Assembly (NCBI RefSeq): GCF_963921235.1
Contig: NC_086108.1
Span: forward strand, 81,654,001-81,718,000
DNA: 64,000 nucleotides
Direction of reading: 5' to 3'
Source: Mobula hypostoma
Lineage: Eukaryota
Shown: positions 7,535-43,254 of the stretch, one piece after another
Layout: each line of letters starts with the position of its first letter
How positions within the stretch are numbered: the first letter of the stretch is position 1
Program-made: the position numbers and the translations under genes
Notes under the pieces: generated by a model
Database searches by the model: none
What the model was told of the DNA's origin: nothing
The model's input: the letters and a program-made list of their open reading frames with translations, nothing else

Positions 7535-8939
7535 GTTGATCCAACTAGAAACACAAAAATACGACAACAGTATTCAAAGTTTTCACTTCTAATTACTTTT
7601 CAAAACATGTATTTATGGCCCACTAGTCGAAACCCCACCCTATATTAAAGCATTACCAGGGATACATCTCAACCCTAACCATGGACTTTTTATTCTCCTC
7701 CCATCCGGTAGGCACTACGGGAGCCTCTGCTCCCGCACCAGCAGGCACAGGAAGAGCTTCTTCCCTGAGGCTGTGACACTGCTGAACCTCTCATCACAGC
7801 GCTAAGCAGTATTGCATCCGTATTGTTCTGTCTCAGTACTTTTATATTTGTGTACTGTAGCACTTTTTTTATTCGCAGTTATCTTGTAAATTACACTATT
7901 CTTTGCATTTCTGGTCAGATGCTAAATGCATTTCACTAGCTTTGTATCTGTACTCGGCACAATGACAATAACGTTGAATCTAATCTAATCTATATTCTCC
8001 AAAACACTAAAGAACAGATTTAATTTTCCCAGGCTGATTGCTTAACCAAATTACTCTGCAAGCACCATGGCAGGTATATAAATGGAGCCATAAACTAAAA
8101 GGTGGGTCATCATTAATAAAATTTCATTTTTATTCATCACAGACTGCCCCTTAAAAACTGAAGCCAAATTCATACCCAGTTGTTAAGGCACCGTGGCATA
8201 TAGTCCAAATGTATACGAGATGTGTGCCACAACATCATTAATAGCAATTAAAATGTAGAAGTTAGAAGCACTCAGTAGGTCTGACAACAACTGTCAAGGA
8301 GTACGGCTAACACTTCATATCAATGCAATAATTTGCTGGAGAAGCTCCACCAGTCGAGCACTCATGGGGGATGTGTGTGGGGTGAGGTAGGGGAAATCAA
8401 CACCCCCCACTCCCATAGAGGCAGCTCAACCCACCGAGTTCCTACAGCAGATTGTCTGTGCTCCGGATCCTAGCATGTGAAGACTTCACTTCGTGTCTAT
8501 GGTCTTTTGTCAGAGCTTGTCAGCACCTCAAGGGTTGGTCTCTGACCTGAAATGTAAACTGATTCTGCCTCTTCACCAAACACATCATTATCTAATCCAG
8601 CATTTTCTATACAATCTTAGAATTGCTGCGCCAAGATAACCAACAACTACCCAACCCCAAGCTCCGCCATCTGAGCCTGCAAGACGTCAGAGAGTGTCAT
8701 TCACAGGGTGAGCTACAAGCTTTTTGGGGACCACTCCACCAACTATTCATAATTGAGACCATATCCCACAGATATTCATTCTAAACCGAGCACTTTCCAC
8801 ACTATCTCAAATTTTATTTCATGTGTTCCCCCACCTCGGGGTTATACGCCATTTCAATGTTTCAAAGGCAACTTCTTCCCTCCCCCAAGCGTGCAGAGGG
8901 AGCCTGGACTGTGGATCTTCCTCAAGTGCCTCCTGGGGG

Positions 8940-9350: not shown

Positions 9351-10249
9351 GATTGCAGTTTTGACTTCAAGTGTATTTTCCCCTCCTACTCGGTTTTAAA
9401 TCTTGTTCGAAAGATGCTATCCTTTCTGTCTGAACTGTTAAGCAGGATTAACATGAGGTCTGCATTAGAATACGATTTTAGAATATTGTCTGGACTGGAA
9501 TATCATGGTCGTGAATCCAGAGAGGGCGCAGACACTGCAGACACCGGAATCTGAGCTGGAAGATTGTTGCGAAGACCAAGCATTGCTGTGCGATCACGTC
9601 ACACAAGGACGGAGTCATTGAGTCATTGACAAACGAGTTCTAGACGCAGAAAGGCTTTGGGCAGAATTGAGTCTTGGGAAATCATTGCAGTGGGCTCCGA
9701 AATTAGTTACCCAATTCAGATGATACTACCAACCAGTAAGTGTACAATAGTAATAGACACGCATACTTTGAAAAGAAAACAATATATTATTTTCTGCTGT
9801 CGCAAAGTACAAATCATTGTTATAAAATATTAAGGGATTCTCCTTACAGCTTATATTAACAAGCAGCCCACTCAGAGCCGGATTTATTATGATTGGCATA
9901 TGACATGATTTGTTGCAGTACAAAGGCATTGAAATTTATAAATCACAACCCCCTAGCTTTTTTTTTGTGGTCCAATGCATTGGAGGGGGTTCATTTTCTT
10001 GCAGGCATTCAAAGTAAATCAAGGAAATACAAAAATCGATGAAAGATGCACTCAAAGACAGCAATGTGCAAAAGGAGATAAAATGTAAATACAAATAATA
10101 AATAAATAAATGATACTGAGCCGTAGAGTCCCTGAAAGTGAGTCCATAAGTTGTGGAATCAGCCCTCCATTTCCAACACTGACCTGTGAATGGGGGCCGG
10201 TGCATATTTACTCACAGGAGGCTAAGCATGATGCATCCTTGAGAGATGC

Positions 10250-12070
10250 GTGTGTGATAGGCAGCTAGAAGGAGATGTTATTACCTATCCAGACTGTGGT
10301 CTCCAGAAGGGGAAGTTGAGGATCCAGTTGCAGAGAGAAGTATGGAACTCCATGTTTTAAAGCTCGGTTAATATTACTGAGGGAATTGATTGTGTTGAAA
10401 GCCAAGATGTAATCGATAAATGGAAGCCTGCGGTAAGTTTCGTGGTAGGTGCTCCAAGGCAGCGAAGAGAGCAATGACATTACGTCCAGTTACTTGTTGT
10501 GGCAGTAGGTGAATTGTAGCAGGTTCAGGCAAATGCTCAGGCAGAAATTAACTCCAGCCATAACCAGCCTCTCGAAGTAATGTCATGGTCCAGTCCGTGA
10601 AATCCGCATTCCCGTTCACGGTCCAGTCCGTGAAATCCGCATTCCCGTTCACGGTCCAGTCCATCGATCCTTGCTCCGGGTATTCCAGTTTTCCCTTATT
10701 CTGTTGGGGTGCCTCAAATGAGGCACCCGATTCTCATTTTGGACTGGCTACATAAATAGCTCCTGGGTTCAGCTTCATTTGCTGGACTGTTCCCTTACCC
10801 TTCCCTTCCTTCTGAAACCTTGACTGCAACCTTGCCTTGAATGCTGTCAAGTTCAACTGCTGGAGCAAGACTGGAGCCTTGCTGTGTCAAGATAAGGAAC
10901 AGTTTGTCGCTATTTGGAATTGTCTCTTTGTGTCCTTGCCTTTGCTAGGTAGGTCTGGCTGTTTGCTGCTACCTCGTGTTGGGAACTGTCTCTTTGTGTC
11001 CTTGCCTCTGCTGGGTAGGTCTGGCTGTTTGCTGCTACCCTGAGTGGAGAACTGTCTCTTCATGTTCAGTGTACTGTGTATAGAAAGAACGCCTGCCCTT
11101 GGTCCTGTTCCCAAGGAGGGGTCCTGGCTCTGTGTTCTGTGTTTCCTGTGCTCAAGTCTGAGTTTCCTGAGTTCCAAGTCCAAGGCTCTGAGGTTCCTGT
11201 CTCCCAAGACCAAGTCAAGGCTTCATGTTCTTGTCCTGTCCAGGTGCCTCACCCAGCAGGAGTACCTTGCCCAGCCCTGTGCTGGAGTTCCCTCGTCCGG
11301 TGCTGGAGTCCCCTTGTCCTGTTCAGGAGTCTCATGTCCTGTCCTGTAGCCACGTCTTGTCCTAGCCTAAACCTGGATTCCGGTTCCAAGTCAAGACCCA
11401 GTTTCCTAGTCCCAACCAAGACCCAGGTTCTGGATCCTTGTCCAGGCTCTAGTTCCAGAGTCCTGTGTCCCTAGTCCAGGCTCCTAGTTCCTAGTTCCTT
11501 GTCTGGATTCTGTGTTTCTTGTCCATGTCCTAGCCCAGGCCCTGCATCCTAGTCTTGTCCAGGGCCTGTGTCAATGTCCAGCATCCTTTCTTCCCCACTT
11601 CCCTTGCTTCCTTGACACACCTAATCCTGTTCCTAGTACTTCAGTGTCTGTGTCTTGCATTTGGGCCTGCCATCAATGCCCCCCTTATGACAAGTAATTC
11701 GTTATGGTAGATGTGAGTGCTACTGGACGACAGACATTGAGGCAGCTCACCCTGCTCTTCTTGGGCATCAGAATGACTGCTGTGCTTTTGAAGCAGGTGG
11801 AACCTCAGAACGTGGCAGTCAAGAAGTTGAAAATGTTTTTGAACACTCCAGCCAGCTGGTCGGGACACGTTTTCACTACCTGGCCAGGTTCACCGTCAGG
11901 GACTGATGCCTCGCAAGGGTTCAGCCTCTGAAAGATGCTTGGACGTCGGCCTCTGGGACATTAAAGGGTTGCCGGATGCTGTGGGGATTCACAGGGCTGT
12001 GCTAGTCTCTTTCAAAATGTGCATAAAATGCATTGAGCTCATCAAGGAGTGAGGCATCACTGCCATTTAT
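10250..12070 (-). mobile_element. Degenerate Rex/L2-like LINE RT fragment (host of the solo LTR)
   Basis: RLPFIDYILAFNTI-like RT motif in ORF 10265-10480. The sequence resumes seamlessly after the LTR. Confidence 0.6.
10581..11692 (+). mobile_element. Solo LTR (1112 bp) with 5-bp TSD AGTAA
   Basis: TGTCAT...ATGACA termini, TSD at 10576-10580 and 11693-11697, TATA-like cataaata ~10751, internal 33-bp and 66-bp tandem duplications. Interrupts a LINE RT fragment. Confidence 0.8.
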
Positions 12071-14714
12071 GTTGTGATGCCCACGATTGAATGGCAGAGC
12101 AGACTCGATGGGCTGAATAGCCTGATTCTGCTCCTATATCTTATGGTCTTAAGGTTTCACCTTATAGACAGTAATGGCACACAAACCTGCCACAGCTAAC
12201 GAGCATCTGATTCCGTCTTTGGTTCACGCTTACAATGACCTTGTAGGATTTTGGATTGCTAAACACTACAGGGCTTCTGGTTTGGAAATCAGAATCTGAT
12301 TAGATTTCATATTACTGGCATATATTGTGAAATTTGTTGTTTTGTGGTAGCAGTATGTTGCAATACATGATTTAAAAAACTAAATTACAATAAGGAATAT
12401 ATATATAGTACGTAGTGTAAAAAATGGAGATGGTGTTCATGGGTTCATTGACCATTCTGAAATCTGGCAGAAGAGGAGAAACTATTCCTAAAACGTTGAC
12501 TGTCTTGGTGGTAGCAATGAGAAGAAGCATGTCTTGGGTGATGGGAGTCCTTAATGATGGCTGCAGCCTTTTTGAGGCATCGCCATTTGAAGGTGTCCTC
12601 GATGATGGAGCTGGCTGAGATTACAACTTTCTGCAGCTTTTTCTGAGGCCGTGCAGTGGCATCTCCATACCAGACAGCGATGCAACCAATTACACTACTT
12701 TCCTCAGTACATCTGTAGAAATTTCGGAGTTTTGATGATATACCAAATTCCATCCAACACCTAATGATATATAGCCAATATTGTGCCTTATTTGTAATTG
12801 CATCAATATATTGGGCCAAGGATAGATCTTCAGAGATGTTAACACCCAGGAACTTGAAACTGCTCACCCTTTCCACTTCTGATCCCTCGATGAGGACTGG
12901 TGTGAGTTCTCTTGATTTACCCTTCCTGAAGTACACAACCAATTCCTTGGTTTTAAACCATAAGACCATAAGACATAGGAGCAGAATCAGGCCATTTAGC
13001 CCATCGAGTCTGTTCTGCCATTCCATCATGGCTGATCCGGGATCCCACCTAACCTCATACCTCTGCCTTCTCACCATATTCTTTGATGCCCTGACTGATC
13101 AGGAAATGATCAACTTCCACCTTAAATATACCCATGGACTTGGCCTCCACCAACAGTCTGTGGCAGAGCATTCCACAGATTCACTACTCTCTGGCTAAAC
13201 AAAAATCTTCCTTACCTCTGTTCTAAAGGGTCACTTTCAATTTTGAGGCTGTGCCCTCTAGTTCTGGATACCCTCACCATAGGAAACATCCTCTCCATGT
13301 CTACCCGATCTACTCCTTTCAACAATAAGTAGGTTTCAATGAGATCCCCCACCCCCACTTTCTTCTAAATTCCAGTGAGTACAGGCCCAAAGCTGCCAAA
13401 TGCTCCTCATATGTTAACCCCTTCATTCCTGTGAACCTCCTCTGGACTCTTTCCACAGACAACACATCCTTTCTGAGATATGGGGCCCAAAACTGTTGAC
13501 AATACTCCAAGTGTGGCCTGACTAGTATCTGATAAAACCTCAGCATTATCTCCTTGCTGTTATAATCTAATACCTTTGAAAGAAATGTCAACATTATATT
13601 TGCTGCCTTTATCACAGACTCAACCTGTAAGTTAACCTTCTGGGGGTCTTGCATAAGGGCTCCTAAGTCCCTCTGCACCTCTGATGTTTGAACCTTCTCC
13701 CCATTTAGATAATAGTCTGCACTATTGTTCATTTAACCAAAATGCATTATCATGCATTTCCCAACACTCTATTCCATCTGCCACTTTTTTGCCCATTCTT
13801 CCAAGTTGTCTGAGTCTTGATGCAATCGCATTGCTAACTCAGCGCTTCCTACCCCTCCAGCTAGCTTCGTATCATCCACAAACTTTGCCACAAAGCTACC
13901 AATTCCATTATTCAAATCAACAAAAAATAATGTGAAAAGCAGTAGTCCCAATACTGACCCCTGAGGAACACCACTAGTCACTGGCTGCCAACCAGAAAAT
14001 ACCCTCTTTATTCACACTCACTGCCATTCCACTGTCCGTGCCAGTATCTTTCCTGTAATGCCTAGGATATTATCTTGTTAAGTGGCCTCATATGTGGCAC
14101 CTTATTAAATGCCTTCTGAAAATCCAAGTAAATGACATTGACTGCCTCTTCTTTGTCCTCCATGCTTGTTACTCCCTTGTAAAACTCCAACAGATTTGTC
14201 AGGTGAGATTTCCCTCTACAGAAACCATGTTGACTTTGACTTATTATATCATTAGTCTGCAAGTACCCCAAAACCTCATCCCTAATAATAGACGCCAACA
14301 CTTTCCCAGCCACTGAGGTTAGGCTAACTGGCCTATAATTTCTTTTGCCTTTCTCCCTCCTTAAAGAATGGAGTGACATTTGCAATCTTCCAGTCCCCTG
14401 GAACCATGCCAGAATCAAGTGACTCTTGAAAGATCATAACCAATGCATCCGTTACCTCTTCATTAACCTCTCTCAGGTTTCTGGGATATAGTCCATCTGG
14501 TCCAGGTGACTTATCCACCTCAAGATCTTTGAGTTTGCCTAGCACTTTTTCCTTTGTAATACCAATGATGCTCACTCCTGCTCGCTGACACTTACAGACA
14601 TCTGGCACACTGCTCGTGTCTTCCACAGTGAAGAATGATGCAAAGTACCCATTAAGTTCTGCCATTTCTGTGTCCCCCATTAGTACCTCACCAACATCAT
14701 TTTCCAGTGGTCCA

Positions 14715-15095
14715 CAGGGGCGGCGCTAAGGTGGTGCTAGCTGGGGCTATAGCCCCAGCAGAAATTGCAATAGCACCACCATAGCACCACCAAGAAATTA
14801 ACTGCAGCTGCTTTGCTTTCTCTGTATAGTTTTGAACACAGCTTGTTTCTCCAGTTGATCTAGTGAAACAGCGCCCCCAATTACCATAGCACCCACGCAG
14901 CAATAAAGTTATAAACTCTGTCAGATCCACTCTACACTTCTGCTTATTCGTTTGTTGTCAATGTCTTGCCATTGCTGTCCTCAGATCAGTTCAGCTGATC
15001 TAAGATCACTTAAGGTGGTGATGTCACTCACTCTCACTCACTGGATTGATAGTATACATCCAGGCGCAGGTCCATGGTCTCACGAGACTAACGGA

Positions 15096-15145
<50 letters not shown>

Positions 15146-17063
15146 CTTTTACAAGCTACGTGGGCCTGGCACGTGCATTATTTTGGCCGGCATGAAAAAT
15201 GGATCGATTTTTAGTCAGAAAACAACCCCATCCAGAGGAATCAGTGGTGTCTCAGCCTGAGCCTGTCTTAATTGAAAGTGACATGCAGAAAGTAGTAAGT
15301 GGGGATGAGGACGACAGCAGTTCATCGAAGGAGTGTGAGGGTGAAGTAGAGGAACAAGAAATGGAGCAGGATTTGGAAGAGAACATGAAGCTGCTCGTAG
15401 TGTGAGTGGGAATACTGTTAGCAATGTTAGCCAGCAGCCTGAGGAAGGACCCTGTCAGCCAGCATTGGAAAAAGTACCCTTCGCAACAGTTTGGCAATCA
15501 GCAAAGGAGTTTTATTCGTGGCTGGTTTGACCTGTACTCCTGGCTGGAATATTCAATCACAAAAGATGCTACATTCTGCTTTGCATGCAGGCATTTCCTG
15601 TGTGGAGGACATGGGTTCCATTCTGAGTCTACCTTCACTGTCACCGGTTACCACAACTGGCGGAAAGCTACAACAGCTTTCAAAACCCACCGTGTAAGTG
15701 CAGCTCATAATTTTGCTGTGGAGGCACAGGCCGAATTCAGATTGAGAAAACAAGACGGTTCAAGATTGGGAAATATGCTTGATAAAGGACATGCAAAGAT
15801 TGTCCAAGAAAATCATGAGTATATGAGAGCAGTGGTTGAGTCTCTATGCTATACTGCGTGCCAAGGCATTGCCCAGCGAGGACACCGGGAGGATGATGGA
15901 TCTGGCAATAGGGGAAACTTTGTTGAGTTGCTCACTGTAATTCGGCAGTTTGATAAGACTGTAGCTAAAAAATAGAGGACAATCCTGGAAATGCAAAAAA
16001 CACCCATCACAATATCCAGAATGAAATTATGGGTATTATGGCAGATATGGTCAGATGTCAAATAAGTGCAGAAATCAAGGAGGCTGGACATTTTGCCATC
16101 ATGGTGGATGAAAGTAAAGACTTGAGTAAAAAGGAGCAAATATCAGTGGTGGTGCAGTATTTGAATAACGAAACAGAGCTTGAAGAATTCTTGCACTTCA
16201 CTCCAGCAGAAGGGTTGGACGCAGAGTCGCTTCTTAAGAGCATTGAACAGACACTCGCCCAGTGTGTTATTGATAAGAACGCGTGTATGGGTCAGTGTTA
16301 TGACGGGGCGGCAGTGATGTCCGGCTGCAATAACGGGGTACAAGAGAGGTTCAGGAAAGAGGTCCCGCAGGCATTATATATACACTGCCATGCTTACAGA
16401 CTTAACCTTGTTTTAGTGGATGTTGTGAGCAATGTACCACAAGCGGGTGAGTTTTTTGAAACTGTGCAGCTGCTTTACAACTTCTTTTCCAACTCTGTTG
16501 CCCACAATCTTTTCATGAAGAAACAGAGAACTGGAATCAATTACACAGCCCGTGGAGTTGAAGAAATTGTCAGATACATGCTGGGCATGGCAGTATACAG
16601 CTTTGTGGGCTATAAGGAAATCACTCCCTGCCATTCTAGCTACACTACAGGATATTATGGGTCAACCAAATGCACGGAGGAAAACAGAGGCCAGAGCTGT
16701 AAATGGACTGATTGACGAGCAGTTTGCTTTACTTCTCACTCTGCTTGAGGATTTATTCCGAGTCACCAAGTTCATGTCAGACCAGCTACAATCTCCCAGT
16801 TTGGAGCTTTCATCTGCTGTGGACTTGGCTCAGTCTGTTATTGATGCACTCTCAGCAAAACGGGGAGAGGAATCATGGAGTGAAATTCCGACAAGAGCTA
16901 GGGACCTGTGCATCAAGGCCAGTATACAGAGCAGACCACATGAAAGGAGACAGGCCCAGCCACCCCGCCGCCTACATGATTTTGTTGTTGAGGCCCAAAC
17001 TGAACGCACACCCGTCACATCCTCTGATGACTTTTGCAAGCACTGTTTCTCTCCAGTTATAGA
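14715..17063 (+). mobile_element. hAT (Tip100/ZMYM1-like) DNA transposon, 3'-truncated, frameshifted transposase
   Basis: Left TIR CAGGGGCGGCGC. TTF-type zinc finger (WLEYS..KDATFCFACRHF), FAIMVDESKD, GQCYDGAAVMSG and YIHCHAYRLNL motifs. No right TIR found. Confidence 0.88.
15097..15141. repeat. (CA)n microsatellite inside the hAT element
   Basis: About 22 CA units read directly. Confidence 0.95.
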
Positions 17064-18109
17064 CACTTCATTCCATTGCGATACTGATACATCTGACTTA
17101 TGTTTCTCCCTCTCAGATTGCAGTATGAATTCAATCATATTATGATCACTGGCTCCTAACGGTTTCTTTACCTTAAGCACCCTAATAGGATCTGGGTTAT
17201 TACACAGCACCTAATCTAAGATAGCCTTTCCCTGAGTAGTTTCAAACACAAGCTGCTCTAAAAAGCCATCTTGTAGGCATTCAACATTCCCTCTCTTGCA
17301 ATCCGACACCAACCTGATTTTTCCAATCCCCTTGCATATCGAAATCCCCCATTACAATTGTGTCATTACCCTTATTACATGCCTTTCCCAGCTCCCTTTG
17401 CAATCTCAACCCACAACTTGGCGACTACTTGGAGGACTATATATGAATCCCATAATTTTTTTTACCCTTGCAGTTTCTTAACTCCATCCGCAAAGATTCA
17501 ACATTCTCTGGCCCTATGTCACCTCTTTCTAATGATGTAATTCCATCTCATGCCAACAGAGCCACACCACCGCCCATGCCTTCCTTCCTGTCCTTTCAGT
17601 ACAAAGTATATCCTTTGATGTTAAGCTCCCAACTGTGGCCTTCTTTCAGCCACGACTCAGTGATGCCTACAATGTCATACCGACCAATCTGTATCACACC
17701 ACAAGTTCATCCACCTTATTCTGAGTGCTATGTGTATTTAAATACAGCATCTTCAGCCCTGCATTGTTCGCCCTTTTGAATTTTGCTTCTGTGGTACAAT
17801 TTAACTCTTTACTCTGTCTGCATTTATACTCAATCACTGGCATTTCCTTCCTTGCATTCATGTTACACCCATCATCTATTTGTAAACCTGCTGGCTCATC
17901 CTCAGCTCTATCATACTGGTTCCCATCCCCCTGCCTTATTAGTTTAAACCACTACTAACAGCTCTAGCAAACCTGCCGCGAAAATATTGGTCCCCCTCGA
18001 TTCAAGTATAACCTGTCTCCTTTCTACAGGTTTCAGATGCCCCAGAAGAGGTCCCAATTATCCAGAAAACTGAATCCCTGCCCCTGCAGCCACCTTATTC
18101 TATTCCTAT

Positions 18110-18958
18110 TGTTACATACCCCGTAACTGGGTTGCCAAACCAGCAGAAATGGATCACTCAGTTGGAGTCTGGATTACTAGAACTAAGAAAGTTTTATTAA
18201 AGAAACAAGCAACACAGTACTCTAATCAAAAGGATAATAAATGCAACAGTTCAGCAATGATAAACATACATGTACACAGAATTCAGATAACAGGATCAAT
18301 CAAGCTCTATCGTTGTCTAGGGGTAAATGACCAGTTTCAAAGTGACGCAAAGTTCAGTCCAATTTAGTTCAGTTCAGTTCGCAGTAATCGCTGCCGTGGG
18401 AGATGGACAGTGGGGGGAAGGAGAGAGAGAGCAAAACGAATGAATATTCAAGGCTTCCACACAGACCTTCGCAGTCAGCTTTCGGGCGAGTCCTTTGTGA
18501 TGTCATCCGAGGTCACCGACCGTGACCCCTCCGTTTCCAGATACGATCGTTTCCCTGTGGTGAACCTGGCACCCAGGCAAGGGTGGACACACACCAGGTT
18601 TCCGCCGATCGTGCCTTTCCACCCTGTGCGTCTATGGCCCGATACTTCCCACCGACTTGTGAGAGACGCACCGCTTCCAGGGTCTTGTTACCTCGGGTGT
18701 CGGGTGTGTCCTGCCTTAGCGAACCTGTCCCTTTTTATCCCCCTGCTGGGGTATCGCCTGTCCATCACTTCAAACAGTTCAGGCTTCAAAGGGGGAGCCG
18801 ATCTTGACAGCTCTCCTTCCTTCATTAACATCTCCAAATGCTGCTCCATTGTTTTCCTTATCTCTCTCTCTCCTGAAGACAGGTGGCAGACCAACTGCCG
18901 ATCCCACCGGTGCCAGCACAGGACAGCTACATCTTAATCTATGTGTATTCTTGTCACA
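18110..18958 (-). mobile_element. Solo LTR (probably Gypsy, 849 bp) with 4-bp TSD CTAT
   Basis: TGTTAC...GTCACA termini, TSD at 18106-18109 and 18959-18962. Reverse-complement homolog of 24983-25793. Confidence 0.88.
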
Positions 18959-20886
18959 CTATCCTCACTGTCATGTGGCACAGTCAACAATCCCAAGATT
19001 ACTACCCTTGAAGACCTGCGTCTCGCCTTCCTTCCTAACTCCCTGTATTCTTTTTTCAGGACCTCCTCCCTTTTTCTACCTATGTTCTTGGTACCATTAT
19101 GTCCCACGACTTCTGGCTGCTCACCCTCCCTTTTCAGGATATTGTGGACGTGCTCAGAAACATTACAGACCCTGGCACCTGAGAGGCAAACTACCATCCG
19201 TGTTTCCTTTTTGCATCCACAGAGTCACCTATCTGACCCCCTGACTACAGAGTCCCCTGTCACTGCTGCCATCCTCTTCACTTCCCTACCTTTCAGAGCC
19301 ACAGGGACAGCCTCAGTGCCAGTGACTCGGCTGTTGTTGCTTCCCCCAGGTAAGTCGTGCCCCCTAGCGGTATTCAAAATGGAGGACTTATTGTTGATGG
19401 GGATGGCCACAGGGGAGTTGTCCACAATCTGACGTTCTCCCTTCCCTCTCCTGACAGTCACCCATTTACCTGTCTCCTGTAGCCTTGGGGTGACTACCTC
19501 CCTGTAGCTCCACAATGTTCTACTGATATTGAGTACAAGACCACCCAACCAGCTGATCTATCTCACTCCAGAATGAGTTTTCATCACCATCTGAAATTCA
19601 GCTGACAATGGTTGTGTCATTGGCATATTTATAAATGCCATTTGAGCTGTGCCTAGCCACACAGTTGTGGGTGTAGAAAGAGTACATCAGTGGGCTAAGC
19701 ATGCATCCTTGAGTTATTGAGTGTTAGCAAGAAGGAAAAGATCCACATTAACTGTGGTCTCTGGGTGAGAAAGTCAATGATCGAGTTGCAAGACTCAGTA
19801 TGTTTTTGAAAGCCCACAGTCATGCACATAGGTGAAGTCAGTGACAGCTCAGGCAAGTTAGTTTCCTGAATATGGCCCTGGTTACCAATTCAAAGCAGTC
19901 CTATAAATGCTCCTCTGTCTCGATTGACCATACCTTCTCCACCCTCAACACGGGGCCTGCAGTCCTAAGTCTCTGCCTATATGATGAGAGTAGAACCACA
20001 TTCAGATGATTGGACTTGCCTAACTGCAGGCTTGAGATGGCAACGTAAGCATTCTTGATGTTGTGTAACATTGATCGGGTACCTCTGATTCTGACTCTGG
20101 CTCCTGTGGTTTAGCTGGTGACGTGTTGATGGCAGTTGGTCAGGAACTTCTCCAAGCTACCCTGGTTGAAGCTCCTGAGATTACCTGGAAGGTATCATGG
20201 TGCTCAGTTTCTCCAGCATATTCAGCCCATCAAATCCATACCAGTTCTTTGTAAGTGTAATTCAGTTGGTTTCAGTCAATTCCATGCCCAGCAAGTTATT
20301 CAAATTTTAGGCACATATTTGGGTCCCTTTTGAACAATGCAATCAAATCTTCCTCCACTTGCTACCTCCGACAGTGTATTCTGGACACTAACCACCTGCT
20401 ACATGAAGATGATCCTCCTTGAATCACTTTGGTTGAGTATTTTGAGGGCACATTGTTCGTCCCCTCCCATTGATCATCTTGTATTGTTCTTAGTGGCATC
20501 ACACAAATACTTTGCTCCATGTGACACCAAGTCTGCTTCACCAATATACCTTTTCTGCAAATAGTTCAATAAGATGGTTAAATGACATCCAAAATTAGAG
20601 GAGCCGAAATTTGCTCTCTTAAAATATTACAGTAACTTTTGAACTATGAATATTCCTGACTAGGCCCAATGAAGCATCTCAGATATCCTAGGTCTCATTA
20701 CAGTAGAATGGAACCTGCCTTACTTTCTCTGACTGATAGAGATTGTGAAGGAAATGAATCAGAGGTAAGATCTCAAGGTGGAGGGCAGCTGAAAATTTAT
20801 TAATTGGGTCTGGTGCTTGGCAAATATTGGACAGATGCATGAAACAGCTTGAGGAGATCAGTAATGAAAGGCCCGCTGCACTAATC

Positions 20887-21482
20887 CAGACATCCCACCC
20901 TGCAAAAACTCATTTCAGGGAGGTAGCACCATCAATTTGCGGGAGACTTCCGGGAGAGGTGGGATGTTTGCAATAGAGTAGCCCTTAGCAGCCAGCCAGC
21001 TAGTTTAAATAGCGTTCGCTATGCCAATGAATGAATGACACCTGTTAAACTCACCTCAACATGTCTTTTACAGTTTTAACCCACCATGGGCAATAGAAAA
21101 GTCACTGTTGCAAACAGTGCAGCGAGCAACACTGTCATTATTTTTGACCCCTATTAGGCAGGGGTACACTTTAGTGTAGTTTGGGGTGACGTACGTTTTA
21201 TATTTTCTTTTTTTGGAACACTGCCCTGGAGTGCTCTCTCTCTCTCTCTCTCTCTCGTGGTTGTTCTTGCTTGCTTGCGCTCTCTCTCGCTCGCGCGCTC
21301 TCGCTTCCTTTCTCGCTCTCTCTCGTGGTCGCTCTCGCGCTTTCTCTTTTGCTTTCTCTCACTCTCTCTCTTGCTCTCAAAAAAATTGATTTCCGTGATA
21401 TTGTATGTAATTTGCGGGCATCAAGGAGCCACTATTCATATGCGGGAGACTCCCGGAAGTTCCGGGAGAGGTGGGATGTCTG
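20887..21482. mobile_element. Non-autonomous TIR element (MITE), 13-bp TIR, 6-bp TSD CTAATC
   Basis: CAGACATCCCACC...GGTGGGATGTCTG with flanking ctaatc on both sides. Internal CT-rich microsatellite. Confidence 0.75.
21233..21378. repeat. (CT)n and degenerate CT/CG microsatellite
   Basis: Read directly. Explains the low-complexity ORFs at 21186-21562. Confidence 0.9.
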
Positions 21483-22253
21483 CTAATCTCTACACTCATT
21501 ACTGGTTTAGCATATCTCAAACACCATATATAAATTTGCAGATGACGCCACTGTTAGCATAGCCTCAGATGGTGACAAGGCAGCTTGTAGGAGTGAGATG
21601 GATCATCTGGTTGAGTGATGTCGCAAAAACAACCTCGCACTCAAGATTCGCAAGATGAGGATTTTGATTGTGGACCACAAAACGGAAGTTGGGAAACCAT
21701 GAACCAGTCTCCATTGTGGGGTTAGTTGTGGAAAGGGTAAGCAGCTTTAAGCTGTTGGGTGTCAACACCTCGAAGGATCAATACTGGGCGTAACACATTG
21801 ATGCAATCATGAAGAAAGCACACCAGCAGCACTACTTCATTGGGAGTTTGAAGGAGTGTGGAATGTTACCAAGGACTCTTCCAGATTTCTATAGATGTAT
21901 GGCGAATATCATTATGGCTGTTGCAGCAGAGTCAGGTAAGGCCCGTCGCCATCTGAGACAGGTCTCCTCCTCATTACTACCATCAGGGACCTGCAGACCC
22001 ACACTCAACAATTTAGTGACATTTTTCTCCCCTCTGCCATCAGATTTCTGAATTGTCCAGGAACCCTCTTCTTACCTTTTTTTTCACTGCTTATTTATTT
22101 TGTTATTTATCGTCATTTATGTCTTTGCATTTTATTGCTGCTGCTAAACAACAGATTTCATGTCATATACAGTGTAGTTTGATCCTGAGAAGGTGCTGGC
22201 TGTGGTCCTCTGTAATTATGATTATGTTAAAGAATGTCCTAACCAGGAGGAAT

Positions 22254-22281
22254 ATGTACACACAGCAATACATAATGCAAG
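22254..22281 (+). CDS. TEX38: TEX38-like protein, putative coding exon 1
   Basis: ATG with -3 A; MYTQQYIMQ + G|gtgctt phase-1 donor (weak) joins the next exon in frame. In-frame ATGs at 22218 and 22224 are alternative starts. Confidence 0.45.
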
Positions 22282-22938
22282 GTGCTTGAAGTTTGGCATG
22301 TTTGCAATGGCCAGAATCTGTGCTGTATTACTGTATGACCACAGTCTTGTTTCACATTCCTGCTGTGACTCTAACCCCTAGTCTTTGACATCATACCTTT
22401 CCCTACTCAGAAAGCAGGCTTACTTAATATTGATGCTCTAACTTGTACCATTTTTGCCATCAATTCAAATTATAGATGAGGCTACACAATTAACATTCAG
22501 GAATGCATTACACGAGGAGTTGGACTGGAGCCTGGAGGAGTATTAAGGCAACACTACTAGGCTCAAGGACAGCTTGTATGCCACTCTTATAGGACTACTG
22601 AGCAGTTCTCTTGCATGATAAAATGGACTGTTGATCTTGCAGTCTACTTTGTCATAGACTTGCACCTTATGGTCTGTCTGCACTGAAGTTTCTCTGTAAC
22701 TGTAACATTTTAATCTGCATTCTGTTACTGTGTCTTTCCAATGAACTAGCACAATGTACTGAAGTGATAAACTGATTTATATAGATGGCAATGCAAAACA
22801 GTTTTTTTCCATTGTTCCTCAGTACATATAACAATAATAAGTTAATTTACCAAATTTATCATATTGAAACCAGTTGTATATGGCATTTAAGCCAAAAATG
22901 GCAATATTTTATTTAACACCCTTCTGTTTTATTTTCAG

Positions 22939-23435
22939 ACTGGGTTTCATCCTTTTTCATCATTTTTGGAGCATGCATGATCTTGGCATCTATTACCTGT
23001 TATCTGTTTCACTTGAGGAAGAATAGAAATCAAAAAAAGGAGATAACAGATTGGGTGAATTCCATGAAACACAGCAGAGTGGTGTACCACCCATTATTAC
23101 ACTGGATTCAGAATAACAGTGATTTATCCATTAAAACAAAAGTATATTCCTCAGATAATGAACGATGCAAGAAACAGAAGATTTGGAAAGCTCAGAATGC
23201 ATTACCATCAAAGTACAAGAAGAAATCAAGGAACCCAGGTGCCCCAGGTGCATCTAGTCATAGAGCAGGTTACTTTCATAATCCGCAGATTGGAAATAAA
23301 TGTTTCCCAAAGTCACCAGCGGATGTTGCTCCAGGTGAAGCCAGATGGATGCATAGTCAACCTAAAAAGCCAAGTACTTTTCTTTTTCCAAAGGTGCAAA
23401 ACCCCTCAAAGTCTTGCCAACCTCTTCTTCTCTAG
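22939..23435 (+). CDS. TEX38: TEX38-like single-pass membrane protein, terminal coding exon
   Basis: Strong acceptor cttctgttttattttcag. WVSSFFIIFGACMILASITCYLFHLRKN...WVNSM...YHPLLHWI aligns without gaps to the recalled human TEX38 N-terminus. TM helix followed by a basic stop-transfer stretch. AATAAA at 23624 and 23853. Confidence 0.8.
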
Positions 23436-24982
23436 ATTAATCATTTGCTAATATTCACAAGTTTAAGAGTGAACTTGATAAAAGGTACCTGACACAGTGG
23501 TGTCAAAGAAGAAATAACAGAATCATTAGTTTCACCAGCAAACCAGAAGCATTAGCGGATTCTGCTTGACTTTCTTATTCAAACTTAGAAAAGCATGAGA
23601 TTTTAATCATCCACCAGGAACATAATAAAAGAGTTTATTCAAGATGAACAACTCAGAAATTGTGTTTATTCAATCCTGAACCCTGTTTCCTTTTATGGTT
23701 TTATCTATTCAAGGTTCCACATTGGATTTATACTCAAGTATTCAAAGTGCATGTTACAATACTCCAAGAATCTCTGATCCATTCCAAGATTCCATGAAGC
23801 ATTGATCTCTTATGCCCTTATCTAACCAAGGTGCTACTTCCTGATTTTATTTAATAAACCAGTAATAGCTGTATCTTGAATTGAACAAAAAGAATAGTCC
23901 TTATTGGAAGTGTTTTTTCTGACTTTTGGAAAATATCTTTGTATATTTTACTGAAGAGTTGATGATAAACCAATGAACATATTTTAAAACTGCAATTTAA
24001 AATGCATACCTTTTGCATAAATAATGATTCAAATCCTATTCAACGAAAGATGTGTGAAACATAAACATATTTTGGTTCTAATATAGTAGTTGCATTTAGA
24101 AGCTTCTCACTGCTACCTAATTTGTTTTCTCCATTATTCATGCCTATTCTAGGTCTGTTATTGCAGATATAGATCATTTGGAAATTTGGGCGGAGAAGTG
24201 GCAAATGGGATTTAATCCTGATAAATATGACACCAAATGCAAGAGGAAAGTATACAATAAATGACAAGACCCTTGGAAGCATTGATGTATAGAGGTCTCT
24301 TTGCCTAGCCATAGCTTCTGAAAGTGGCAACACCAGTGGATAGGACAGTAAAGGTGGCATACCGCATGCTTGCTTTTGGTTGGGCCATTGAATATAAAAG
24401 TTAGGAAGTCACGTTGTCTTGTATAAAATTTCATTGAGGCCACATTTGGAGTATTGTGTTCTGCTCTTGTCACCACACTATATGAAGGATTTGGAAAGGG
24501 TGCAGTTGATGCTCATGGAGGACATTGCCTGGATTGAAGGATATTTGTTTTAAGAGAGGTTGTACAAACTCAGGCATGTTAATGTAAACACTTTAACATA
24601 AACTTACGTTTGTGTTTGCCACTACAAAAAGCTAATTTTTGTAGCATTATTCCCTGTATAGTTATAGGCAACTATAAACATGAACTTGAAGACTGTTTTC
24701 CCTGTAGTATTGGAGGCTGAGGCGGTGGGGGGGGGGGGTTACACGATGTAAGTGTATAAAATTACAAAAGGCATAGATGGGGTAGGTACAGTCTTTATCC
24801 CAGGTTAGGAATGCCCAATGATAAGGTGAGTTGGGGAATGGCTCAAGGAAATTTGTGAGGCAAAATTCCTTGCTTTAAATAAATGTCCAGAATATGTTAC
24901 CAGCAGAGATGGTAGAAGCAGACAATGATGGCAAAGTTAAGAGGCATATAAACAGAGACATGAACAGGCAAGGAATACAGGG

Positions 24983-29556: not shown

Positions 29557-29620
29557 TTGTGCAGTGGTCAGTCTGTAGTTACTAGTAACTAGTTTGAACC
29601 AAAGACTTCATTAAGCACAA
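29557..29620 (-). promoter_or_regulatory. SECIS element, type II, in SELENOP2 3' UTR
   Basis: Minus strand TTGTGC-TTA-ATGAA-GTCTTTGGTTC-AAA-CTAG TTA CTAG-TAACTACAGAC-TGAC-CACT-GCACAA. Helix I TTGTGC/GCACAA, UGA/GA quartet core, ~10-bp helix II, AAA bulge and apical mini-helix. Confidence 0.92.
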
Positions 29621-30294
29621 TAAAACTAGAGGAATAACTCACACTGAATAGTACACGTAAAGCCAACATCAAAATATTGATACATACTTTATCTTGCAGC
29701 ATTTCTGCCAAGGCAATGCAAATTCTCCTGCAATACTCCCCCCCCCACCACTCCCATAATGAATATTCATAGTTATGTCTGTGGATAACAAGAAATGGGA
29801 CATCCCTGTGTTCCTCTTTCTTTACAAATTACTTTATACTGGCTTAAAAGGTTAGAATCTGATTTATTCTTAGCCCCTGTTCATTCCACATAGCACTGAT
29901 TCATACCACATACATGGGATGCATGACAAAAGGCAGTATTCAGCTGAGATCACACTGGTTTTCCTATATTCAGAGGGCTATCTGGTTTGAGGCACACCTT
30001 GAAAAAAGTTGTTCAAAAGACCAGTCAACAGAGCTTAACCAAATTAGACTGCAGTCGTCGGAGATTCCCAAATATAAATTAAATTGCTTCGAGATAGTTA
30101 ATATCAAACTAGGTTTCTGAAACAAAACTTAGTACCCCGTTAGGGTCAACATTGGCATCTAAGCAGTTAAGGCCACTGAAATGAAGTTGAGTATTTTCAT
30201 AATAGGCTCCTGTTAAGATTTAGTTGGTCACATATGGCACTCATGCAGGCGATTTTCAAAAGCCTCAGTTTCAAACCCGTGATGTTAGATCGAA

Positions 30295-30327
30295 TTAATT
30301 TGGTTCTGTAGAGGGTGATGAGACCGT
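30295..30327 (-). CDS. SELENOP2: SELENOP2 putative last coding exon (TVSSPSTEPN*)
   Basis: First strong acceptor (ttcttttcttgcag) downstream of exon 3, and it lies upstream of the SECIS. Gives a 193-aa protein. Confidence 0.6.
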   Translation of the reverse strand, partial: TVSSPSTEPN

Positions 30328-30524
30328 CTGCAAGAAAAGAATATCATCAGTTTCCTGTTGACGAGGGAAAATCATTCTACTTTAGCTGCTTTATTTGCTT
30401 TTAGCTACTTCTATGACAATTATCTAGTCAGAGATGCCACAAGCACCATTTTGGAACTACTGTGATCCATCTACCACCCACCAATGTGTTCTCTCAGAGA
30501 CCAATGATTAATGCTAACAATTAC

Positions 30525-30657
30525 CTCCAGTGTGTTGTTATTGAATCTGCAGAACCCACAGATATCCCTGTTGTATGTGGCTCGAATTGCTGCTTCAACA
30601 TAGGGGAAATATGAATGGCTACGTGGTGACGTGACATGAAAGGTCAATTTACCACAT
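30525..30657 (-). CDS. SELENOP2: SELENOP2 coding exon 3
   Basis: RCGKLTFHVTSPRSHSYFPYVEAAIRATYNRDICGFC. Bounded by ttcctag and gtaatt, 133 nt. Confidence 0.92.
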
Positions 30658-30892
30658 CTAGGAAAAGAAGAGAAAATTTCAAATGTAAGGAGTCTCATTT
30701 CCATATTCAAACGACTATCATTTGTCAGACAAACTTGAATTCTCAACAACTACTGAATTCATAAAACAATAGCCAGTACCATCATAATTTTGAGCCACAT
30801 GGAGAAAGGAAAAATTGCTCCCAACCCACCTAGTCTGGTAATCTCATCTGTCTCAAATGTCCCAGGAACACAGGGGGAGCAAAAATGTAATA

Positions 30893-31645
30893 TAGTAGGT
30901 CCTGGTGAATTGGAACTTAGTGGGACCAGTACATTTATCTCAATTAAGCAGCTGCCCCAATTAGCCGAAGTTTCATGGAAGTAATTAAAAAGATATTAAA
31001 AAAATATACTGAGTAACAAATTATGTATTTAAATGAAATACGGAACAAATTAGAACACTACCAATACTTCAAAACTGTGTCTTAGTTCCTCATACTTATT
31101 GACAGATGATGTCATCGGTGTCACGTTCCTTTGAATGTAAATGAACAGAATCAGTGGAAGCACCTAGTGCAGATAATGAACTGCCTTCAGGAAGTGCTGT
31201 TGACCATTGCATCCTCCAAATCTTTACTTTCATTGTAATATTCAAGATGATCATTGATACCTTCAGATTTTTCATAGATTCTAACTTGTGTACTGAAATT
31301 GTTTCATTCACTCTCGGCCAATTCCGGCATCACCAAGCCTGAATGCCTGAAATTGTCAGTGACAAAATTCACTGCGTTTTCAACACAAGTACAGGCAATT
31401 GATGCTATTTAAAAACTGTTCACTCGAAGCATGCAGTAGTGTCCTACTGGCCACACAAGTGCACGTGACTGACGCTAGTTAGAAACTTTTCAGCAACAGT
31501 CTCCTGCCCCAATTGAGAGGCACAGTGTCCCAAATAAACAAAGTGAATCCTGGCTATCTTCTCAATTAGCTTTTGTTCTTTAAGAATTATGCCTAATAAG
31601 TGACTACCCCAAATAACCAATGGTCCAATTAACTGGAATCCACTG
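30893..31645. mobile_element. Second copy of the same Tigger-like element, in a SELENOP2 intron
   Basis: Shared internal sequence (e.g. tgcatcctccaaatcttt, gaacaaattagaacactacc) and right TIR GGAATCCACTG. Confidence 0.65.
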
Positions 31646-31929
31646 TGAGGATGAGTACTGATGCCTGATTCATGCACATCAACAAGGAGCAGATTATAAT
31701 GGCAAACAAACTCCGCATAGCTACAAGGCAAAGTATCAAAGTGCCAGAGCCCAATAACTAATGCAAAAAGTTCCTCCCATTTACCATCTTAAAATAAATA
31801 TATGACACCATCTTAAGAATTACTATACGGAAATACTTAAAGTGGAAAAATAATCTGCTTATTAACAACATATTCATTATCGTAACAAACAATGAGCTCT
31901 AAGTAAAATTAATACCCTGAAACACCAAC

Positions 31930-32142
31930 CTATCATAGACAAAGACATCATCCTTGACACCCCCCAAGATACGCCAAACATCAGGTTGAAATAGTTGTTG
32001 CTGGTAAACAGGGATATCTTTGGGAGCGCTGGATCTGAGTTTCCAATACAGGATCCTGGATTCAGATGCTTTATCGTTCACAATCATGTAATGTATGCCC
32101 GTTAGGCCCTGATGGACAAGCTTGTCACGCAATTTGCCTAAT
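31930..32142 (-). CDS. SELENOP2: SELENOP2 coding exon 2
   Basis: LGKLRDKLVHQGLTGIHYMIVN...IPVYQQ...DVWRILGGVKDDVFVYDR (SelP N-terminal domain). 213 nt, phase 2-2. Confidence 0.95.
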
Positions 32143-32965
32143 CTATCAAAGTGAAAAAAAGTACAAGCTGTCAATAACATGACTTTACAAATGTAGCATT
32201 AAGATGAAAATACGTGCAAGACGTTTCTGATTGGGCTTTTCTTTTTAAAATTGTACACAATTTGAGATCTCATGGTGCCACAGAATGATTGAAATGATTG
32301 ATGTATCATTTATTGAGTCCATCAACTTCCAAATCATTTTGTTTTTATGGGAAAGTTAAGTGATGCTATGATTTTATTACTTACTTTTCAAATCTGAAAT
32401 ATTAGAAGGCAAAAGAGAACAGGATTGCTCTTGGGACATAAACCATTTAAAAAAGGACAGAACTTAACCAGTTGCCAAACATAACCAAAGTACAAATTTG
32501 GCAATAGGTCCAAATTTCATTTTAATATACAATTTTTCAATGCATTATAAACAAATAATAAGGACAAAAATATCCAACATCAGAAGTCTTAACTGAGAAG
32601 GCTAACTAGAGGGAAAATATTGATTACGATACACCCTGCCCAAATAGTTAACATTATAAAAGTGATCAATTCATTTGAAATCTGTACTCAAGACTCAGTC
32701 CATGTATAGAGTTACTGATACCACGACTGCTAGGGTTGTCTCTGACAAAACAAGGGCCATCGTCTACAGAATGGATGAGAGTGAAGTGAAAAACAAGAGC
32801 ACTTCATTCCTCGACACTCTTGAGCTCTGCCTAACTGCTAATGGGAATGAGGGAGAATGGGACTGCAGCAAGTCTCCATACTATGATGTTGAATTGCAAC
32901 GTTTGTGTAGTACTATGGACAACATTATTCTGTGGGGTAATGTATAGATAAATTGCCACACTTAC

Positions 32966-33168
32966 ACGGCAGCCTGCTTTAGACAGAACCATCAGCTTGC
33001 TTTGAGAAGGGCCACCACGGTAATTTGTCCAGACTGTTCCTCCATTGGTATTTGACGGCCAATCTGCCAGTGAGGAGCCACCCGACAGATTCTGATGTCA
33101 TTCTGCGCTGCCGCCAGGGAGATTATTAACCCAAAAAGAATGGCAATTGAAGTTCTCTCCAGCCCCAT
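32966..33168 (-). CDS. SELENOP2: Selenoprotein P2 (SelPb) coding exon 1, with Sec UGA at 32994-32992
   Basis: Signal-peptide-like MGLERTSIAILFGLIISLAAA, then C..APHWQI...GQITVVALLKAS-U-WFCLKQA (UxxC, codon 59). Acceptor gives exon start 33187; donor gtaagt. 203 coding nt. Confidence 0.93.
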
Positions 33169-35894
33169 CAGTATCCTTCGTAGGTTCCTAAAATGTGAAT
33201 TGAGGAAATAATAACTTTTTCTAAAATTGGAAGTTAAAATGCAGTAGCAAATGTAGAAGGCTCCAATTATCATGTTTATCAGTTTTACTCTGTAAAAAAA
33301 TTATATTAAAGCCACAATGTAAATGACCTGCTGAGGAGCTGAGGGCTGAGTTTACATTGTTAAGAGTTCTTCTCTTACATGCAAAAAAAATACGAGTCGT
33401 TTGTGTGCTGAGCCAGAATTTTTTTGTTGTTTAATCAAAAAAAATGTAGTGTCTGAGACGATCTCCCACAGTTAAACTGCACCAACACTAATTTTGTTGA
33501 TAATCCTGCTCTAAGTTCGAAATTAAATCATTATCAATGTATACTACCTTGAATTTCATAATATTACAGGTGTTTACATGAAAAAAATAGCAAAACTATA
33601 CATAAATGAAGTCTGACAGACAACCAATGTGCAAAAGACTAACTGCAAGTTGTAAAAAGTCCTTGAAAGTGAGGAGGTACAGAATCCTGAAGGCACATAC
33701 TCAGCGATTCAGGAACAGCTTCTTCCCCTCTGCCATCTGATTCCTAAATGGACATTGAACCTTTGGACACTACCTCACTTGTTTAATATACAGTATTTCT
33801 GTTTTTGCATGATTTTTAAAATCTGTTCAATATACATATAATCTAATTGATTTACTTAAATTTATTATTTTTTTCTTCTATATTATGTATTGCATTGAAC
33901 TGCTGCTGCCAAGTTAACAAATTTCTCAACACATGCCGATGATAATAAACCTGATTCTGATTTCTTGTGGCAGCACTCCATATAAATGTACTTGATGATT
34001 GAGAGGACTCTGCCTGTGATGGACTGGGCTGTATCCAGCACTTTCTGTAGCTTTTTCTATTGCTGGCCATTGGTGTTTCCATTCCAGCTATGATACAACT
34101 TGTACTGGTAGACAGATAAACGACTGTGTAGCCTCAGCTGTAGCAAGGACTAGGCCTCAAGCCTCGGCTTGCCCATTGCTGCAGACCAGGTGAGAGCTAG
34201 TCTTGCGTCCTTGCTTGGCTCGGGCCTGGCCTCTCCAAACAGTGCTGCCCTCCTGTGTTTGAGCAGTGGAATGATGGGCTGGATTGCATGTGTCTGCACA
34301 CTGCCAGGAGACTGCACTGTCGATTGCTCGATATAGTCCAAGACCCTGAATGACAACATGCATGAATTCTTCCTCCCCTCGAGTGAATATGCTTCTTTGC
34401 TCACTATTTGAATTATGTTATTCGCTACTTTGAATGTCACTTTAAACGCAAACAACAGGAATTCTCGGCCTGAAACGTCGACTGCGCCTCTTCCTATAGA
34501 TGCTGTCTGGCCTGCTGCGTTCACCAGCAACTTTGATGTGTGTTGCTTGAATGTCACTTGCTATTTTGAATCCTTTGCACCAGAGGAACGCTGTCTCTTT
34601 CATCTGTATCCTTGTATAGTTTGAATGATAATTAAATTGATTTGATTTGAAAATCGCTCCAAGTAACCTAGGTATGGTATTTTAAACTATTGCCTTGGTA
34701 TGTATTCTGCAAAGCTTCTAAAACCTAGCACACATGGAGTAAATTAAGGGATTTACAATAGAGGTGTTTTTTTTAATCTGTGGATTATCACAGAATAGCC
34801 TGGAACTTCATGAATACAAAACCCCTGCTTTATGTTATGAAAGGCATTTAAGAAGAACTAAATTTGGAACACTATGAATTAGTTATGGCTGTTCTCATTT
34901 GTAATGAATAAAGGTTATCATTATCTCTAGGCAGTGTGTGTAAAAAAAACAAAGAAAGCAACTGTTGGATGCAAAACCTATGAATCACCATGATGTGCTG
35001 ACACTAACCAAACAAGGCAAACAGCCAGTATGACCCCATGGTCGTTAAATGTTGATTGAGAAAACAAAGGGTAACTTGCAGGTTGAGTCTGTGTAAGGAT
35101 GGCAATCACAGTGTTCACATTCATTTTAAAAGGACTAGAATATGAAAAGCAAGGATATAATGCCGAGGATTTACAAAACATTGGTCAGGCTGCACTTGGA
35201 GTACTGTACTATGAGCAATTTTGGGCCCCTTATGTAAGAAAGGATGTGTTAGCTTTGGAGAGGATCCAGAAGAGGTTCAGGAAAATGATCCCTGGAATGA
35301 AAGGGTTAACAGATGAAGAGTGTTTAAAGGCTCTGGACCTGCTATTTCAGTTTGGAATGAGGGAGGATTCTAAACTGAACTCTAAACTAGACCAATGAAA
35401 GGCCTAGATAGTGTGGACATGGAGAGGGTGTTTCCTATAGTGGCAGAATCTAGGACCTGAAGACAGTCTCAGAATAGAAGAAATGAGAAGGAATTTCTTT
35501 AGCCAGAAGTTGATGGATCTGTGTAATTCATTGACAAGTTGTCAGTTATATTTAAAGTGGATGTTGACAGATCCTTGATTGGTAAGGGTGTCAAAGGTTA
35601 CGAGGAGAAGGCAGGAGAATGGGGTTGAGGGGGATAATAAATCAGCTATGATTTAATGGTGGCGCAGTCTGTGACCAAATAGCTTAATTCTGTTCTTACG
35701 TCTTATGGTCTAAAATTACAAACTCTAGAAGTTGGATCGAAAATTGGCTCAAAAAAAAAATAGGTGGGTGGCTCAGCTCGTTGGACTGGAAGGTTCCGTC
35801 CTGTATCCTTAAATTAATAAATAAAACTATTTTGTGCATGAAAGCCTTCTAACACCGTAAGTCCAATCCAAAACAAAGTCATGAAATACCAACA

Positions 35895-43218: not shown

Positions 43219-43254
43219 AGTCCTGACGAAGGGTCTCGGCCTGAAATGTCGACT
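43219..43254 (+). ncRNA. Second hammerhead motif copy (GAAAC changed to GAAAT)
   Basis: agtcctgacgaagggtctcggcctgaaatgtcgact in the opposite arm. Confidence 0.55.

Follow-up and report, generated by a model that had tools for sequence, protein, structure and literature searches.

A probable TEX38 (THEG4) orthologue in the ray Mobula hypostoma and the age of the TEX38 family

Does a ray possess testis-expressed protein 38 (TEX38, also THEG4 or C1orf223), and if it does, how is the gene built and which part of its product is the ancient one? The question is raised by a stretch of 64,000 nucleotides from Mobula hypostoma (assembly GCF_963921235.1, contig NC_086108.1, forward-strand positions 81,654,001 to 81,718,000), which we refer to as the window and in which positions are counted from its first letter. 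A first-pass annotation of these letters had proposed a two-exon TEX38 homologue. We read the locus as an intact TEX38 orthologue with two coding exons separated by a 13.2-kb phase-1 intron and with a product composed of a membrane helix, a conserved core and a tail, and we give this reading a probability of roughly 0.85. Coordinates are collected in Table 1.

Membership in the family is indicated first by the translation of exon 2, which scores 39.3 bits (E 9.3e-10) against Pfam PF15834 (THEG4, "testis highly expressed protein 4", which is TEX38), above the curated cut-off of 27, with residues 1-71 aligned to profile positions 2-72 of 201. A first homology search returned nine proteins, and a precomputed PF15834 domain is recorded for 9/9. 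The closest is LOC132401556 of the stingray Hypanus sabinus, with 87% identity over 100% of its length; the others are proteins from six sharks (59-61%), a Logan protein (55%) and a short catshark isoform. Among the elasmobranch entries are Stegostoma LOC125456609, Carcharodon LOC121289465, Scyliorhinus LOC119964499 and Mustelus LOC144497437. Named relatives from elasmobranchs are labelled "uncharacterized protein" in NCBI/UniRef, and none is called TEX38. They agree with the ray in gene order and N-terminus, Hypanus also in its stop codon, and the chimaera protein (Callorhinchus A0A4W3ID63) is 54% identical over the core.

A profile made from nine elasmobranch sequences was then scored against all 1.84 billion representative proteins at a threshold of E 0.001. 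Nine proteins fell below the threshold, all of them THEG4 and none from another family. Beyond elasmobranchs these matches include A0A4W3ID63 of Callorhinchus milii (1.8e-25) and two proteins already named "testis-expressed protein 38", XP_029570036.1 of Salmo trutta (2.1e-8) and KAM5248602.1 of the rodent Ctenodactylus gundi (2.5e-4), along with an Oncorhynchus transposon fusion and an unnamed protein of 117 residues. With a wider profile 139 proteins were found, and PF15834 is carried by 120/120 of the matches listed, mostly mammalian or marsupial TEX38. This is the reciprocal type of search that the first-pass annotation had asked for, and it matches THEG4/TEX38 proteins only.

In ungapped BLASTP alignments, ray exon 2 shares 36/67 positions with the chimaera protein, 21/68 with the salmon protein and 19/56 with gundi TEX38 (pairwise E 3e-12), the last figure reproducing the approximately 20/56 identities to TEX38 counted earlier by hand. 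Residues W1, F6, H24, W38, P51, L53, W55 and I56 (exon-2 numbering) are invariant in ray, sharks, chimaera, salmon and mammals. One simple possibility is that the likeness reflects a chance similarity between proteins in which a hydrophobic helix is followed by basic residues, since the match extends over only 56-71 residues, a third of which form membrane helix. However, the Pfam score exceeds the curated cut-off, the exhaustive profile search yielded the THEG4 family alone, the strongest identities (W38, P51, L53, W55 and I56) lie outside the helix, and the phase and position of the intron are identical to those of the mammalian gene. Chance similarity is effectively refuted by these findings, and we assign it a negligible probability.

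The intron provides evidence independent of the protein alignments. In gundi TEX38, exon 1 ends in GGA C/gtgagc and exon 2 opens with cag/TG TGG GTC, so that a phase-1 intron interrupts the codon right before the tryptophan of WVSLYF. The exon joint in the ray, A/gtaagt ... cag/AC TGG GTT, yields MILPTN/WVSSFF... and agrees with gundi both in phase and in where it falls with respect to the tryptophan that opens the helix. Exon 1 of salmon, like that of the ray, is made up of ATG and 13 further bases; the salmon intron, likewise in phase 1, is found three codons ahead of the aligned tryptophan. Mammalian TEX38 further resembles the ray protein in a very short N-terminus, a single membrane helix (residues 4-26 in mouse, PMC11912386 and PMC12335575; residues 7-29 in the ray), the motifs H-x-[RK]-K, W-V-x-x-M and Y-x-P-L-L-x-W-I, and two coding exons with the phase-1 intron before the helix. 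It differs in that no similarity extends beyond about residue 70, and the ray tail is shorter and strongly basic; the ray protein as a whole has 27 Lys and Arg versus 7 Asp and Glu. The proposal of a TEX38 homologue in a cartilaginous fish is therefore upheld by the Pfam score above cut-off, by a profile search that returned TEX38 only and by an intron of the same phase and position as in the mammal.

The salmonid proteins (Salmo trutta XP_029570036.1 and Salmo salar XP_045543025.1) share the core with the ray, whereas their tail is acidic and Glu-rich rather than basic. The Salmo salar protein (L005 10001-10935) carries PF15834 and belongs to the same 90% cluster as Salmo trutta TEX38, and it is named "cilia- and flagella-associated protein 251" (CFAP251); its naming was probably misled by the Glu-rich tail.

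While the first-pass annotation was right in giving the gene two coding exons, it placed the first at 22254-22281, and our revised model places it some 13.2 kb upstream of exon 2. The N-terminus of the Hypanus sabinus protein matches window positions 9648-9737 with 26/30 identities (tblastn, E 2e-12), and the N-terminus MILPTN/W read from the ray agrees with those of its relatives, which are MIIPNN/W or MIMPNN/W in sharks and MIMPTN/W in Hypanus. The acceptor proposed earlier at 22938 holds, with an AG at 22937-22938 after a long pyrimidine tract, an exon from 22939 and a frame open to the stop at 23433-23435; tract and AG are nearly letter-identical in a second batoid whose protein is 55% identical (Logan contigs L001-L004). 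Both AATAAA signals seen downstream are also present. The revised spliced product has 170 residues instead of the approximately 174 first estimated.

The RefSeq model of Hypanus LOC132401556 places 42 further residues ahead of the conserved start MIMPTN. Window positions 9616-9719 are 87% alike to residues 1-42 of that model at the protein level, but a frame shift interrupts them, as does a stop at 9627. Since the frame upstream of exon 1 is closed by the stop at 9627-9629 and contains no ATG before 9720, a Hypanus-type extension of 42 residues is ruled out as coding sequence in the window. The extension in the Hypanus model is probably 5' untranslated sequence that has been read as coding.

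Sequencing runs were available as assembled contigs, of which those of four runs were laid on 18200-24000; that the runs are RNA is a guess, and the three that contain exon 2 (X1-X3) come from one study. Contigs of runs X1-X3 cover 22939-23115, 23064-23326, 23306-23612 and 23369-23606 with zero differences, and one contig of run X2 (depth 2.3) begins exactly at 22939. De Bruijn graph assembly breaks contigs at splice junctions and can thereby leave a contig that ends at the first base of an exon. In all runs the unique stretches 19752-20721 and 22274-22467 are nearly uncovered (depth 0 to 1.7, with none at 22274-22467). Run X1 contains 9/9 sampled words of 9590-9735 as well as most of exon 2. 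Coverage of this kind is what RNA would give, and it weakly supports transcription of the gene and use of the acceptor at exon 2. Contig depth is very high at 18200-18975 and 20916-21497, and these segments are therefore read as high-copy repeats.

An alternative first coding exon, as the sole or an additional form, would be the mini-exon at 22254-22281 (MYTQQYIMQ) joined to 22939. The letters described for it do exist, with an ATG and a final CAAG/GT within 22254-22282, an open frame, phase 1 and a fair donor (AAG/GTGCTT, 5/7 consensus positions), and its surroundings (22209-22243, and TACATAATG at 22269-22277) are partly conserved in a distant batoid. Yet the intron of 13.2 kb holds 226 phase-compatible candidates running from an ATG to a GT, about 30 of them in its last 1 kb, and 17 have an equal or better donor. 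The peptide MYTQQYIMQ(D)W is unlike the shark and stingray N-terminus MI[ILM]P[NT][ND], which the exon at 9720-9735 fits; the L001 batoid reads ...ATAATGTCAG/GG at the position homologous to the mini-exon donor and has no GT there; zero contigs from any of the four runs lie on 22274-22467; and the proposed 22281/22939 joint is absent among the joints listed for contigs of these runs over 18200-24000. The mini-exon is almost certainly wrong as first coding exon, and we consider it highly improbable in either form. Exon 1 of the preferred model is that at 9720-9735.

The block that contains the rejected mini-exon, window 22209-22281, aligns with positions 760-840 of L001 and reads GTAATTATG.TATGTTAAAGAATG.CC, followed 30-40 bases on by TACATAATG, although the protein of that batoid is no more than 55% identical; a GT donor is lacking there. 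The block may simply belong to intron sequence that evolves slowly, act as an intronic regulatory element or represent an old alternative exon. Much of the intron elsewhere is transposon debris. Between 12445 and 17145 it includes RVT_1 fragments on the minus strand (14062-14418) and, on the plus strand, a remnant of a DUF4371 transposase split over two frames (15406-15975 and 16029-16715). According to the gene table the Hypanus gene spans only 4.57 kb in total, a difference that the transposon-filled intron of 13,203 bases in the ray explains.

The product is predicted to be a small single-pass membrane protein. Its hydrophobic stretch, WVSSFFIIFGACMILASITCYLF, confirms the transmembrane helix noticed earlier: Kyte-Doolittle windows of 19 residues exceed 1.6 from residue 2 to 13 and peak at 2.3. 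The helix is followed by HLRKNRNQKK and then by DWVNSMKHSRVVYHPLLHWI, and both the basic stretch RKNRNQKK and the motif W-V-x-x-M-x6-Y-x-P-L-L-x-W-I described earlier are found here. The cluster of positive charges after the helix predicts a cytosolic C-terminus. Of the 170 residues, six would then lie outside the membrane, and the single helix would run into a basic stop-transfer stretch; the cytosolic side would consist of a conserved core some 45 residues long and a basic tail that is disordered. The AlphaFold2 model has a mean predicted local distance difference test (pLDDT) score of 56, with a long helix at residues 2-46 (87-94 within the membrane, about 75 beyond it) and a short helix at 51-58 over PLLHWI; nothing past residue 60 is modelled with confidence, and the tail remains below 50.

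Selection differs along this chain. In a comparison with one other batoid (L002), residues 1-66, which include helix and core, have a ratio of nonsynonymous to synonymous substitution rates (dN/dS, Nei-Gojobori) of 0.28 and the remainder one of 0.96, with dS about 0.53 in both. The dN/dS check suggested by the first-pass annotation for rays and sharks thus finds constraint in the core and next to none in the tail, within this single comparison. The tails of the window protein and of Hypanus both end in ...CQPLLL, and those of L002 and of sharks are longer by about 40 and about 90 residues; in pairwise BLASTP the ray tail gives no alignment to salmon or mammalian tails (in the mammal, beyond residues 56-71). 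From these comparisons conservation appears limited to the helix and about 45 juxtamembrane residues, and the tail appears to evolve almost freely. The earlier proposal of a conserved core of about 56 residues with a C-terminal tail unrelated to the mammalian one is in line with this.

A short and nearly neutral tail could also be a sign of decay. The locus would in that case be a relic, either a unitary pseudogene or a transcribed open reading frame (ORF) without function, and the tail shorter than in sharks and the L002 batoid, its dN/dS of 0.96 and the transposon-inflated intron would all fit. However, the reading frame is intact with a stop shared with Hypanus, the core has a dN/dS of 0.28, both splice sites are intact, and every residue that is invariant from ray to mammal is present. 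We regard a decaying relic as very unlikely and retain the intact orthologue.

What TEX38 does is known from mouse, where TEX38 and the multi-pass DHHC palmitoyltransferase ZDHHC19 form a heterodimer at the spermatid plasma membrane and stabilise each other, TEX38 also localising the enzyme, and where loss of either results in bent sperm heads (PMC11912386). In an AlphaFold3 model the TEX38 helix packs against the membrane helices of ZDHHC19 (PMC11912386). Mouse TEX38 also binds ARRDC5, and TEX38 is required for the cytoplasmic droplet (PMC12927553).

Several points speak against an intact orthologue as we describe it. Only the first third of the Pfam PF15834 model is matched, and the C-terminal two thirds of the protein are unlike mammalian TEX38, as is also the case for the salmonid proteins that NCBI names TEX38. 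The 9735/22939 junction is spanned by no read or contig, the contig mapping having covered 18200-24000 with exon 1 outside, and the runs holding exon 2 are only guessed to be RNA, with no tissue given. Since the protein collection searched lacks the window's own protein, this assembly may carry no annotation of the gene. Mammalian micro-synteny (ATPAF1 / TEX38 / EFCAB14) is not kept, the window having DPH2(-) / THEG4(+) / SelP(-); because the neighbours differ, micro-synteny was rejected as support, and orthology rests on sequence and intron structure. The mouse tail, too, contacts ZDHHC19 in the AlphaFold3 model (PMC11912386), and the ray has no counterpart of that tail. Finally, zDHHC19 is reported absent from teleosts (PMC11167447) and salmonids keep TEX38, so that in the ancestor the partner may have been a DHHC enzyme other than ZDHHC19.

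Judged by its homology to mouse TEX38, the ray protein would have its working module in the helix and juxtamembrane core, which would dock onto a DHHC enzyme. What has been conserved for over 400 million years could then be the DHHC-docking part, and the tail may carry lineage-specific contacts, of which ARRDC5 would be one in mammals. Such a mode would resemble that proposed for accessory subunits of DHHC enzymes, in which a small partner stabilises and localises the enzyme, as with GCP16/GOLGA7, the accessory subunit of ZDHHC9 (PMC11912386); the sequences are unrelated.

Another possibility is that the ray gene is a true THEG4 member with a different job in cartilaginous fishes, where it would either not be testis-restricted or not be a partner of ZDHHC19, for instance as an accessory subunit of some other DHHC enzyme or of another membrane protein. 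The shared part is limited to helix and juxtamembrane core, the tails are unrelated and nearly neutral, teleosts keep TEX38 although zDHHC19 is reported absent there (PMC11167447), and the neighbour at the promoter is DPH2 in the ray versus ATPAF1 in mammals. Against this, the conserved part includes the very helix that packs against ZDHHC19 in the mouse AlphaFold3 model (PMC11912386), and the data at hand give no sign of expression outside testis. A changed function is rather unlikely in our view, although it is the alternative we take most seriously. Doubtful to a slightly greater degree is a broader idea, in which the helix and core (about 65 residues) would be an ancient gnathostome escort of DHHC enzymes, older than ZDHHC19, its only known partner. 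The module would serve a different DHHC enzyme in fishes; mammals would have acquired the TEX38-ZDHHC19-ARRDC5 sperm pathway later, as a specialisation that made use of tails evolving freely.

The distribution of the intact orthologue and its relatives bears directly on the age of the family. Since it is present in chimaera, sharks, rays, salmonids and mammals with a shared intron position, TEX38 goes back, as judged from these sequences, to the common ancestor of jawed vertebrates, in agreement with the age suggested by the first-pass annotation. An analysis of Ensembl trees stated that Tex38 had originated in amniotes (PMC12335575), and this origin is contradicted by the ray, shark, chimaera and salmonid genes. 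A literature search on TEX38, THEG4, ZDHHC19 and ARRDC5 in sharks and other fishes found no paper on non-mammalian TEX38, and the literature searched contains no statement of TEX38 outside amniotes. Existing predictions already include orthologues with PF15834 from a chimaera and at least seven elasmobranchs, and a salmonid protein is already named TEX38 by NCBI. The view of the gene as hidden and easily missed was overstated, given that NCBI predicts it with PF15834 in seven other elasmobranchs; only for this genome is the protein missing from the collection searched. With relatives already in NCBI/UniRef under their Pfam domain, our result is a modest one, which concerns the name and the age of the gene and does not reveal a gene of a new kind.

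TEX38 has been a male-fertility gene of interest since 2025, with three mouse knock-out papers (one of them PMC12335575), and is a proposed contraceptive target. In the deep comparison, constraint is confined to the helix and the roughly 45 residues after it, and this gives a concrete guide for mutagenesis of the ZDHHC19 interface. For the Mobula genome the gain is a corrected gene model of 170 residues with exon 1 13.2 kb upstream.

Table 1. Features of the TEX38 gene and its neighbours in the window.
Feature	Position	Strand	Remarks
5' untranslated part of exon 1 (probable)	9590..9719	+	9/9 sampled words of 9590-9735 in run X1
Exon 1, coding part	9720..9735	+	ATG ATA CTA CCA ACC A = M-I-L-P-T and first base of Asn codon
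Splice donor GTAAGT, phase 1	9736..9741	+	context CCA/GTAAGT
Intron, 13,203 bases, full of transposon debris	9736..22938	+	
Pyrimidine tract and AG acceptor (AG at 22937-22938)	22908..22938	+	read in sequence
Exon 2, coding part	22939..23435	+	two bases of Asn codon, 164 codons, stop TAG 23433-23435
Transmembrane helix (predicted), residues 7-29 of the 170-residue product (23 residues)	22941..23009	+	hydropathy, AlphaFold2
Conserved juxtamembrane core, predicted cytosolic	23010..23138	+	H-L-R-K ... W-V-x-x-M ... Y-H-P-L-L-H-W-I ... D-L-S-I-K
Lys/Pro/Ser-rich basic tail, poorly conserved	23139..23432	+	dN/dS, alignments
AATAAA signals 3' of stop	23624-23629 and 23853-23858	+	contigs run past both
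DPH2 exons (PF01866, 205 and 79 bits)	4417-5178, 6598-6891	-	
DPH2 further 5' exons (probable)	7017-7145, 7355-7567	-	
Selenoprotein P-type gene, downstream of TEX38	29557-33273	-	PF04592 at 31899-32180, 32992-33273

In the window the TEX38 gene stands head-to-head with DPH2, with about 2 kb between the DPH2 start and TEX38 exon 1, and these 2 kb or so may serve both genes as a bidirectional promoter region. The order in Hypanus is Diphthamide_syn(-) / THEG4(+) / 193-aa gene(-), and the gene 3' of TEX38 there is probably also of the selenoprotein P type (SelP). In Scyliorhinus the order THEG4(+) / SelP_N(-) agrees with the window in part. The gundi locus reads ATP11 (ATPAF1)(-) / THEG4(+) / 495-aa gene(-). 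For the second ORF of the SelP-type gene in the window, the match reaches a stop at the position of the SelP selenocysteine.

Further along the window, 48671-49090 (+) appears to be a first exon with a UBA domain (PF22562 / PF00627, just under the cut-offs) followed by a Gly-rich run, and it resembles what we take to be the start of USP24. In human, DPH2, TEX38 and USP24 presumably all lie on chromosome arm 1p. An inverted duplication at 42449-43321 consists of pairs of near-identical ORFs, 42469-42804(+) with 42966-43301(-) and 42449-42802(-) with 42866-43321(+), and adjoins a reverse-transcriptase fragment at 41950-42348.

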